A stretch of 64,000 bases of DNA from Calcarisporiella thermophila CBS 279.70 (taxonomy: Eukaryota > Fungi > Calcarisporiellomycota). Shown piece by piece: positions 24,253 through 34,669 of this stretch. Made by a program: the position numbers and the translations under genes. Position 1 is the stretch's first letter; every line of letters begins with the position of its first letter. The notes under the pieces are model-generated. The model made no database searches and was not told the DNA's origin. It saw only the letters and a program-made list of their open reading frames with translations. The DNA lies in NCBI RefSeq assembly GCF_041956535.1, contig NW_027192194.1, positions 155,444 through 219,443 of the forward strand, in the 5' to 3' direction.

Positions 24253-25149
24253 TTAATTAGCACCAACTGTAGCTTCCGACGACACGCCCTGTCTTTGTTG
24301 TCCATCCTTTCCTTTCTCGCTTGTTTCCTCCTCGTCGCTCTCGTTGCTGCTTGTGCTTGCACCTCTACTTGCTCCAGTCGGAGCCGTCACGGACGAGTGG
24401 GCGTGAAAGCCATCTGTGCCCGTCAGCTGAAGCTTGGCGTTGAGTTCTTCAACTTCCTTGATCAATCGCATACTATCATCAACTCGCATTGCCCCTAATG
24501 CAAGCTTTGTGTGCAGTTCCTCGATTTCCTTACGTAGTGCTTGATTTTCTTCTTGAAGGCGTGCCACCTGCTCCTCGAGCCCTTGCACATACACCTTCTT
24601 TTTCTTGCGGCATTCCTTGGCAGCAATACGGTTTCGAGCGAGACGGCGTTGTCGGCGTTCATCTGCAGTGAGATTACGAGTGTTGCCCCGTCCTCCAGTA
24701 GAGGATTGTACATCGCCGGTGGTGCCTGTGCCTCCCATTTGCCCATCCCCGTGATCTCGTGACAAATTCGACACCAATCCATGTCCAAGCAGGGATGCAA
24801 TGTTAAATGGCTGCCCGGAAGCTTGTGCATTCTGTGCGGCTTGCACCAATGCCGCTGGACTAATACCATTGAAATTGTCGCTGAACAACTTATCGTGCAA
24901 GATGGTCGCAGTTAGAAGGGTGTTCGTGCCCGCCTCGCTAATCATGGAGGCTGCATTAGCATCCTCACTAGTGGTGGGCTTGTTCTCCATTTTCTGCTTC
25001 TTGGACCCATCATCGCCAGAGGAATTGACAGAGTCGGCTGGTCGTTTAGTGCCGTTACTTGTGGCATCCGAAGTCTTCTGCTCGTTTTCCTTCTTAGCAG
25101 ATTTATCGTTTAGTTCGACAGATTTGTCTTGCGTTAGTTTATCGCCCAT
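24253..25149 (-). CDS. CREB/ATF1-like bZIP transcription factor
   Basis: RRQRRLARNRIAAKECRKKKKVYVQGLE plus leucine zipper; probable 5'-UTR intron about 25177-25368. Confidence 0.88.
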   Translation of the reverse strand: MGDKLTQDKSVELNDKSAKKENEQKTSDATSNGTKRPADSVNSSGDDGSKKQKMENKPTTSEDANAASMISEAGTNTLLTATILHDKLFSDNFNGISPAALVQAAQNAQASGQPFNIASLLGHGLVSNLSRDHGDGQMGGTGTTGDVQSSTGGRGNTRNLTADERRQRRLARNRIAAKECRKKKKVYVQGLEEQVARLQEENQALRKEIEELHTKLALGAMRVDDSMRLIKEVEELNAKLQLTGTDGFHAHSSVTAPTGASRGASTSSNESDEEETSEKGKDGQQRQGVSSEATVGAN

Positions 25150-25610
25150 GATTCTTGCTGGAATGTAGTGTTAATTCTAGGTATGCAAAATCAGCAATTA
25201 GAATAAATGTCCGAAAGGCTAGGAATGATTAATGGGGAAGGGTGTCCTCCATCTCCTTCAAGAAAGTGGTTGGCAGCCATAATTATAGTGTTGGGAGTTG
25301 AGTGGTATGTAACCAGGGATAATACCAAAGGGAAAGCACAGAGTAATAAAAAAAGTGAGGTAGCTTACCTTGGCTATTAGTCGCGTCACCAGTTTGCTTG
25401 CGAAAGAGCGAAGAGGAATAAGTGTCGACGTAGTTGGTGACGGAAGAAAGAAGACGAAACAGAATAAAGAATAAAAATTTATTTTTACAAATCAAAGATG
25501 ACGCCATCTTTTGTTGAGGGCAGTTTGTGACTGCCATTGGCCACCATAGGGTTTTTTTTTTATGATATATTTGGAGACAACGCTTCTGTTCCAAATTTTT
25601 TGCTAACAAC

Positions 25611-27304
25611 ATGCCGGATGCCCAAACACAAACCCAATCTCTTCATATTGTAGAGCGCACTTGTCGAACTGTCATTAAGCCCGATGGACTCACCCGCCCA
25701 TCCAATACGTTCCGTCATTTACAACTTACATGCCTCCAACAAATTGAGTATCGTCTCCGCCCGGACCCAAGCAATGCCAACATCGATGAGAAAATGCTAG
25801 AACAATTTGATGTGATCCTGGATGGTGGAAAACTAAGGATGGATATATCCTTGATGTCCATACATGGATACAATTCATTAGTTTATGAAAGCAATATATG
25901 CGTTTAATAACGCAGAGCTATATTATGCTTGACACAGTTTCTTTATTCATATCACGTCTTAACATTAGTTGGCGCAAGTCAGATCTATAATTTCCATATA
26001 TGCGAGGAAGGAGACTCTCCCTTTTATGTCAAGGTAAATGCGCGTTAATTTAGCATAGTGTAGCATGGAGAACTCTTCGTATTTTCTTTTTTATAAACAA
26101 GTTTAATCGCCTCAATTCTATAGGAATGGGAACACTATGGGTACACTCACGTTGATCGATGCTTTGACGCAACAAGGGGACGAGGACAATGTATTTTATT
26201 TGCATGGACACATTGCCCTAATAGTGATTGAGATAATCTCATTATCTCATGTTTTATTTTCTATATCCTGAAAAAAATCTATAACTTCAGCGTTTTGGCT
26301 GTACCAAGGCGCCAACCATCGTTTTTACTTGCCTTCTAATATAGACCGCCCTCACGCATTCTTCGTAAAGCTGCAGCTTGAGTTTAAATGGAGTCCAAAC
26401 TATATCCTTTTTTGCCAAACCTTGATCCTGAGGCTATAACAACTCGAATTCACCACGTATCCTTGACTTAATTTAAATCGCACCCAAGCAACTAAAGAAA
26501 ATATTGAGTGGAAAACAGAGATCAAAACACGGGGAAGAAATGGAGGCTGCGCGACATGCACTTAGGAGTATATTGACAAAAAAGCTCGTACAACGGTATC
26601 CATTTGTTTTTTCGCCGATACATGTAGAGGTATTTTCAAGGATATGTCTTGGTACAATAACTATAAGTAAACGGCCTATCGTGCGAATGGGTGTTATTAG
26701 CGAGTGAAGCTTATGTCAACCTATGTTCCGATTATATCGAAGTCGCTCGCATCAATACTTGAGATGACAACCGATGAAGATACACGTTTAAAGGCAAGGC
26801 AATTAGTAAAGGTTTTCTCGTAAAGTCAATTCGAGTAGAAGGATGTTGCCCGTTAAAGGATCTGAAAATAGGATATCCACGAACGAGTTTTATCACCCTT
26901 CCAGGACCCACTTGAATACAACTTTTTCTCCAATGAAGGCAAGGATCTATCTAACTCTACTAAAGGAGTCCAGGACACTCTCAATCACGGGTTATATGCA
27001 CTTTTGAGAGATTATTTAAGAACACACAGTTGCAAGGTAACCACCAATTAACTTAGTATTCTCCATATACACAATACAAGCTAGTGCATTATTATCACAG
27101 GCAGAAATATTTTCCAACACTAACGCAAAAATTGAAACTGAAAAGGCATGGCATCACCCTCCAGCCTTGGTTTCGCCATCACATCTTCCTAAAGCAAGCT
27201 TCATGCACCCATTTCCTACACAAATGCACGAAGAACCACAAGATTTTAAATATCAAGCGAAGTTTCAGCAAGCTCGGGAAACGGATCTTGATAAAATAAC
27301 TTGA
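25611..27304 (+). CDS. Probable TopoVIB-like meiotic protein (Rec102/Rec6/TOPOVIBL/MTOPVIB family), 8 exons, about 369 aa
   Basis: Exons 25611-25844, 25956-26033, 26124-26190, 26291-26401, 26484-26629, 26701-26805, 26872-27036, 27101-27304 give an open 1110-nt frame with WEHYG and AARHALRSILTKKLVQRYPFVFSPIH..RVKLMSTYVPIISKSLASILEMTTD. Confidence 0.7.
25845..25955 (+). other. Probable U12-type AT-AC intron
   Basis: Donor ATATCCTTG, branch-like TGCTTGAC (25926-25933), acceptor CAC; phase 0, in frame. A weak GT-AG alternative exists (25881-25937). Confidence 0.6.
26402..26483 (+). other. U12-type (minor spliceosome) AT-AC intron
   Basis: Donor ATATCCTTTT, branch TCCTTGAC (26460-26467), acceptor CAC; removes an in-frame stop and restores the frame (T|CC = Ser). 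Confidence 0.85.
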
Positions 27305-27426: not shown

Positions 27427-28331
27427 CTATTTCCCCCTATGTTCTGCAAATGTTTCCGCGATCCCTCGCCCCTCAATGATATCACGCATACATTTTTCGT
27501 CCACTTCCACGGATTTCTTACACTCGTTTATCACATCCTTCACTAGATGCAATGGCAAGCAGACTACTCCATCTGCATCAGCTATAATTATATCCCCAGG
27601 ATTTATCTTAACTTCTCCAATGGATAAGCTTTGGTTGAGGGTGGTAGGCCGAGTGAACGGTCCAGCGGAAAGCGTAGAGGTAGCCCGTGCGAAAACCTTT
27701 AAAGTACAATGGAGGCTAAATTAAAAAAAAGTGCAATATAAATGCGCGCAATATATATATATATACCGGAAACTTGGAAGACCGCAATTCAACCAGATCC
27801 CGGACACGTCCGTCTACAACCACCCCTCTAGCGCCTCGGAACTTGGCACGTGCAGCGAGAAGGCCACCCATAACAGCATTTTTGGCTTCTACTCAACGTT
27901 CCATATTAATAGATGTTTTCTTTGCATTTTACGATTGAAAATGTGGAAGTCAACCTTTTGGAGCTGAGAGAACTAAAACATGACCTTCAGGCACGACGTC
28001 GCACTACACTAACCAAAAGTAAACATCATACTAAACACTGGAGCAAATTAGATAGTATTACAAAGTGTTCACTGGGGCGTGGTTCATTAGACTCTTTCTC
28101 CACCATCTTCACGAGAAATGCGGGTCCAATGATTCGAGTCTCGGAATGTTTATAGGAAGGAGAAAGCATGTCGATGTCAGGAATAAATCCTCCGTGTGGG
28201 ATACGGAGCTTCAAGAGAGCATCGGAAATCTAGCGATTCAGAAGCGTTAGATATAGCATTATGAAATAATGGGGATGCATTTCTCCTACATCGCATGACG
28301 TGAAATTCTCTAGTTCCTTCATATAGTCCAT
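27427..28331 (-). CDS. RraA-like / HMG aldolase family protein
   Basis: FTSCDISDALLKL..GGFIPDI, IIGPAFLVKM, AVMGGLLAARAK, VVVDGRVRD, INPGDIIIADADGVV. Confidence 0.9.
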
Positions 28332-28914
28332 ATTTTTCGATTTGATGAGATAACATTGCCACCAAGATTTTTAGTTTCATAGTGACTATTCGGCCGAGTC
28401 CTCTCAACGTGAAATTTTAGCCGGATTTATTTCGATGCACCAAAATAGACCAGAGCACTAAAAGCATTTTACATGTACATTTACAGTGATAATTCACCGT
28501 ATTCTAGCCGTGGCTCTAGCATACACAAACTTTTGAATGTAAATTACGTGGCAGATCAATATATATACTTTGTCATCATTTTTCCAAAGCAAGAGTTCAG
28601 TGCAGGTCATTGGATTGAGAAGAACGGGAAGCACGGAGAGTAGTAGAGCATGGCTATTGCGGTTAGTAAAAAGAGAGTGAAGTATATCTATTATGATTTA
28701 AAGCGAAGTGAAAAAAAAATCAAAATATAAAGAAAAATATAACCAAGATATCATAATACAAAATAGAAGAAGGAAAGCAAAATTTGAAAAACGAAAGAAA
28801 AAAGACTCAAGATATTACAATGAATATCAATTAACCAAATGTTTAGTAAGGAAGAAAACAAAATAATTAAAGATATTTATAAGTAAACAAACGGAAGTGT
28901 GGGCAGCCGGCCAT

Positions 28915-34669
<5,755 letters not shown>

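Follow-up and report, generated by a model that had tools for sequence, protein, structure and literature searches.

An eight-exon gene of Calcarisporiella thermophila, of which the public annotation holds only the second half, very probably belongs, judging from its predicted protein, to the TOPOVIBL/Top6BL family (Rec102, Rec6, MEI-P22, TOP6BL and MTOPVIB). Its product would be the subunit known as TOPOVIBL (Top6BL/Rec102 type) in the complex that makes meiotic breaks, here in what appears to be a transducer-only form without the GHKL ATPase. If what is established in yeast and mouse carries over, its product is likely to be a working Spo11 partner in meiosis. Three signals point to the family: a match to the REC102 profile, a match to archaeal Top6B transducers and an intron class found also in mammalian TOP6BL. 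Each is weak, and they are largely independent of one another.

Gene structure and two AT-AC introns

Spliced translation within the window (the whole stretch of 64,000 nucleotides that was analysed) joins eight exons on the plus strand, at 25611-27304, into 371 codons and a stop without any internal stop. The gene is single-copy in the genome. Its features, with the spacer upstream, are as follows.

25150-25610, no strand, spacer of 461 bp, head-to-head with a divergent bZIP gene; no frame longer than 57 codons
25611-25844, + strand, exon 1, aa 1-78; N-terminal region whose end is a putative first transducer strand pair
25845-25955, + strand, intron 1, putative U12-type AT-AC, 111 nt, phase 0
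25956-26033, + strand, exon 2, aa 79-104; no significant match on its own
26124-26190, + strand, exon 3, aa 105-126; WEHY at 26127-26138 is a candidate WKxY motif
26291-26401, + strand, exon 4, aa 127-163; a possible additional hairpin precedes candidate strand C (26353-26385); alternative acceptor at 26344
26402-26483, + strand, intron 4, putative U12-type AT-AC, 82 nt, phase 1, within aa 164; the public gene model begins downstream
26484-26629, + strand, exon 5, aa 164-212; holds a candidate switch loop and the beginning of the stalk helix; the start codon of the public model is at 26540 (M183)
26701-26811, + strand, exon 6, aa 213-249; helix resembling the one by which Top6B binds Top6A/Spo11 (YVPII at 26722), with a third helix after it
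26872-27036, + strand, exon 7, aa 250-304; C-terminal region, in which one helix is predicted
27101-27304, + strand, exon 8, aa 305-371, then the stop; no family match for this C-terminal tail

A preliminary description of this DNA had proposed an eight-exon open frame of about 369 aa; the exon structure stands, whereas the length is 371 aa. The motifs it quoted are all present on the plus strand in the places it gave, including a WEHYG about 27 residues after a VL, W106 lying 27 residues past V79. Five of the seven introns are GT-AG, and all seven have a GC content (0.28-0.38) below that of the exons (0.40-0.49). For intron 3 there is a second in-frame acceptor at 26344, which would yield a product of 353 aa; we prefer the acceptor at 26290 because the 54 bases between the two are exon-like in GC (~44% by direct count). 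Pairing an alternative donor at 26141 with the acceptor at 26344 breaks the frame.

A search with exon 5 recovered the public model XP_069254614.1 ('uncharacterized protein VTP21DRAFT_8332', Calcarisporiella thermophila, 189 aa). It is identical to the last 189 residues of the 371-aa model and holds exons 5-8 only, so that introns 5-7 are the same in both models. The public model takes as its start the first Met downstream of the second AT-AC intron, and 182 residues are dropped. The halving of the gene is due to the presence of two introns of the uncommon AT-AC class; the preliminary description had expected mis-annotation owing to non-canonical introns, and the public model breaks off at AT-AC intron 4. 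A fungal Rec102 homologue has been mis-annotated before, in Sordaria, and the present gene illustrates how AT-AC introns conceal genes from annotation.

The introns in question, 1 and 4, each have the donor ATATCCTT, a branch site CTTGAC and an AC end. We took as U12-type AT-AC introns those with an ATATCCTT donor, a CCTTRAC-like branch site and an AC end, in a genome containing minor snRNAs; on these features both introns appear to be of this type, in line with their earlier description as non-canonical, and their removal is predicted. They are the only two matches to the combined donor, branch and AC pattern in the 64-kb window, and the chance expectation for such donors in the gene region is ~0.05. 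The branch site of intron 4 is complementary to the branch-binding stretch of the genome's U12-like RNA; that of intron 1 is weaker and lies 23 nt from the 3' end. U6atac is present in the genome over cut-off, and the U12-like RNA scores under cut-off (E 1.9e-6). The latter, at C1:926673-926772, looks shortened because the whole 151-position model is matched in only 100 bases. Two scans of the 28-Mb genome gave ~27 distinct AT-AC U12 pattern matches of 66-120 nt, two of them in this gene, versus 5 control matches. Minor introns are already known in these fungi, and the ~27 matches, a lower bound, are high beside the 4 (Rhizopus) and 20 (Phycomyces) minor introns that have been quoted (PMC10639083). 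Exons 1-4 are predicted to belong to the gene, and production of the full-length protein would require two removals by the minor spliceosome.

An AT-AC intron is also found in the mammalian members of the family. Mouse Gm960 and human C11orf80 (TOP6BL) have a conserved minor intron with the donor AT-ATCCTTT (PMC6717393 supplementary file 3), that of mouse being given at chr19:4652276-4658259, and in mouse testis the splicing of Top6bl is altered upon loss of U11 (PMC12956336). AT-AC introns make up ~22% of 770 human minor introns, so fewer than 1% of genes have one. It is unlikely that the fungal gene and mammalian TOP6BL share this class by chance, and the argument is independent of protein similarity. 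Perhaps one of the fungal AT-AC introns lies at the same codon as the mammalian one, a possible reading that we offer tentatively and are inclined to doubt. If it were true, the Spo11 partner would have carried a minor intron since before fungi and animals diverged, the intron would mark orthologues even where protein similarity is gone, and meiotic break formation might be tied to the activity of the minor spliceosome.

Likeness to Rec102 and to archaeal Top6B transducers

The REC102 family had been named from the sequence before any search was run. Among 24,736 Pfam families, REC102 (PF21736) is the sole match for XP_069254614.1 (E 0.019) and for its residues 1-70 (E 0.0086), and it is also the top match for residues 1-55, 20-72 and 1-125, the best fragment giving E 0.0068 and 16.5 bits, which does not reach the PF21736 cut-off of 27 bits. 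The match always falls on profile positions ~131-185 of 197, in the C-terminal half, and starts in exon 5. The gene is not filed under Pfam REC102 as curated. Residues 60-189 of the public protein have no Pfam match, and profile searches of the genome with PF09239, PF15091 and PF21736 gave no direct match. Exon-by-exon searches of Pfam, NCBIfam and PDB returned nothing or chance-level matches, exon 1 having no match in Pfam.

When the window was cut into 2,488 six-frame pieces, profiles built from 48-63 archaeal Top6B transducers gave exon 6 the highest score, 8.0 and 9.5 bits versus 4.8 and 4.3 for the next piece. Alignment with hhalign puts exon 6 on the C-terminal Top6A-binding helix (E 0.0007; E 0.001 for residues 1-72 of XP_069254614.1), with a score reached by none of 150 shuffles. 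In two hhalign runs the best match of exon 3 is WEHY on the archaeal WKxY, a score reached by 10 of 150 shuffles. Exons 1, 2, 4 and 5 alone have no significant Top6B match with hhalign, and the placement of exon 4 is unstable, one of two runs aligning it with strand C and the other with strand B. Colinearity of four exons came out at 10 in 200,000, but we give this value no weight, as it is driven by exon 6, and exon 4 was shifted in a later run. The archaeal profile itself matched no Rec102 or TOP6BL chain in PDB at E 10; faint scores are therefore to be expected of true eukaryotic members.

The order of elements can be set beside that of yeast Rec102, which has Trp 91, strand C at 147-156, a stalk from 165 and a hairpin to 231, followed by a 34-residue tail (PMC11746154). 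With strands assigned by eye, the layout here is Trp 106, candidate strand C at 148-158, a helix from 183 and a hairpin to ~236. The WxxY thus stands in the right order upstream of candidate strand C and the stalk, with W106 as the near-invariant Trp. About 24 residues including SGKQ occupy the place of the switch loop by eye; hhalign placed exon 5 elsewhere. A single-sequence model of XP_069254614.1 residues 1-125 has helices at 2-13, 26-51 and 56-78 (pLDDT 51). According to PMC9665070, three Spo11-binding helices (the 3H element) remain in divergent family members. The three modelled helices would be in line with this element, and aa 190-250 resemble the Spo11/Top6A-binding helices in sequence. 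The single-sequence model of exon 1 is helical, without strands, and of low confidence (pLDDT 55). Searches of PDB with the fold of the residues 1-125 model returned generic helical matches only, and ESM Atlas gave no feature match and, again, generic helical structures.

The N, G1 and G2 boxes of GHKL are absent from the 371-aa model. Only 105 residues precede Trp 106, and the spacer upstream is too short and stop-rich; because of this the absence of GHKL is real for this gene. It had been noted in the preliminary description, which can now be extended by the lack of upstream coding room. The proposal made there, a TopoVIB-like (Rec102/TOPOVIBL) partner of Spo11, is supported by the REC102 match and by the Top6B profile on exon 6, with scores below the curated cut-offs.

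Genomic setting and alternative explanations

A single Spo11/Top6A locus (C1, ~457,200-459,100, minus strand) scores over cut-off with PF21180 in the genome, and RDIYY, GKGYP and DGD are kept in it. A TOPOVIBL is expected beside Spo11, and loss of GHKL is known in several lineages. A search of the genome with the DMC1 model gave one strong RecA-type recombinase locus (C22:116493-117770), which from its motifs looks like Rad51. Neither Dmc1 nor Rec114 was found in low-sensitivity searches of the genome, Dmc1 being either absent or missed through small exons. The suggestion that the gene is evidence for meiotic capacity holds only as an argument from gene inventory, in which these searches placed no Dmc1 locus. 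The genus is called anamorphic in the title of a reference listed in PMC6899921.

Homologue searches with exon 5, exon 1 and XP_069254614.1 residues 1-125 (proteins of at most 330 aa) returned the gene's own protein or nothing, and metagenome contigs contained no homologue. Synteny anchored on the neighbouring bZIP gene, in Umbelopsis, Parasitella and other contigs, gave no match to this gene. That bZIP gene (24253-25149, minus strand) is intronless and encodes 298 aa; the genes most closely related to it, in Umbelopsis and Mucorales, are likewise short and of a single frame, with different neighbours. In the spacer between the two genes (25150-25610) there are TGACG half-sites at 25384, 25438 and 25499, an MCB-like ACGCG at 25382 and an MSE-like CACAAA at 25524, all of them pattern matches without a chance estimate. 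On the other side lies a convergent gene on the minus strand (~27430-28250), presumably, from our own reading of the frames, an RraA-like/HMG aldolase gene, whose stop is ~125 bases from that of the gene studied here. Beyond it, at ~28800-33100 on the minus strand, is a formin gene whose FH1 region is rich in proline (Pfam Drf_FH1).

The faintness of the scores raises the question of whether we are dealing with a lineage-specific protein unrelated to Top6B, which owes its REC102 and Top6B matches to the chance likeness of an amphipathic helix. The lack of any homologue, scores that all lie below cut-offs, significance confined to exon 6 and blank fold searches would agree with this. We nevertheless consider it unlikely: the family was named before the search and then was the top Pfam match for every fragment covering the helices, the separate archaeal profile matches the same helix with the WxxY upstream in the right order, and the AT-AC intron class is common to mammalian TOP6BL. 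The archaeal profile misses the Rec102 and TOP6BL of PDB too, so weak scores are what a true member should give. At the other extreme, the likeness to the archaeal transducer might suggest a genuine B subunit, belonging to an ATP-driven topoisomerase VI. The gene is not a true TopoVIB, and we give this reading next to no weight, given the missing N, G1 and G2 boxes, the 105 residues before the Trp, the absence of coding room upstream, the lack of a PF09239 match and the single Top6A/Spo11 locus of the genome.

Two further readings accept the family and dispute the form or function of the protein. The gene may be TOPOVIBL-derived and no longer serve meiosis, either as a relic or reused in vegetative cells; the description of the genus as anamorphic (in that reference title in PMC6899921) and the missing Dmc1 are compatible with this, and the head-to-head arrangement with the bZIP gene could permit co-transcription in growth. 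We regard it as very unlikely, since the reading frame and the rare splice signals have survived across all eight exons and Spo11 keeps its catalytic motifs. Alternatively, the public 189-aa model could be right, and the protein a minimal TOPOVIBL of three helices and a tail with exons 1-4 unused. The public annotation does begin at M183, exons 1-4 are predicted from sequence, and minimal forms exist, as in Schmidtea or Pristionchus (PMC9665070). This too is highly improbable: two U12 introns, each with donor, branch site and terminal AC, connect the upstream exons without a break in the frame, the exon/intron contrast in GC extends over them, and exon 3 contributes the WxxY. The most reasonable explanation is a full-length, transducer-only TOPOVIBL.

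The gene is probably a new member of the TOPOVIBL family and not a new kind of system. We found no paper naming a TOPOVIBL in Mucoromycota, although the main survey (PMC9665070) may include some in its figures or supplement. TOPOVIBL is among the meiotic genes hardest to detect, and the corrected model offers a seed for searching it across early-diverging fungi. It also lengthens the list of meiotic components for a genus that has been called anamorphic, and supplies a data point for the timing of the loss of the GHKL domain; a GHKL-less TOPOVIBL outside Dikarya would bear on whether the ATPase fold was lost in a single early event in fungi. With its thermophilic host, the Spo11-TOPOVIBL pair may suit biochemistry.

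Comparison with known systems

The closest parallels in organization can be drawn with S. cerevisiae Rec102 (PF21736; PMC11746154), which is likewise of transducer-only size without GHKL. In Rec102 the Trp motif and a long spacer are followed by strand C, a loop, the stalk and a hairpin of helices, a succession that the gene described here appears to share, the weak Pfam match falling over the hairpin. It differs in keeping the Tyr of WKxY, where yeast has WEEQ, in a tail of ~135 aa versus 34, in its two AT-AC introns and in a score under the Pfam cut-off. To our knowledge, Rec104 is not to be expected outside Saccharomycetaceae. With the archaeal Top6B transducer (PF09239; PDB 2ZBK, 2Q2E) it has in common a WKxY-like motif and the C-terminal Top6A-binding helix, whereas it has neither GHKL nor H2TH, its spacer after the Trp is longer and it scores below all cut-offs.

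Unlike mouse and human TOP6BL (Gm960/C11orf80) and plant MTOPVIB, which keep a degenerate GHKL fold, the present gene is too short to contain such a fold. It also differs in giving no match to Pfam DUF4554, which we take to be the C11orf80 family. Compared by description, it nonetheless resembles TOP6BL and MTOPVIB in having three C-terminal transducer helices followed by a C-terminal domain and, like mammalian TOP6BL, it carries an AT-AC minor intron.
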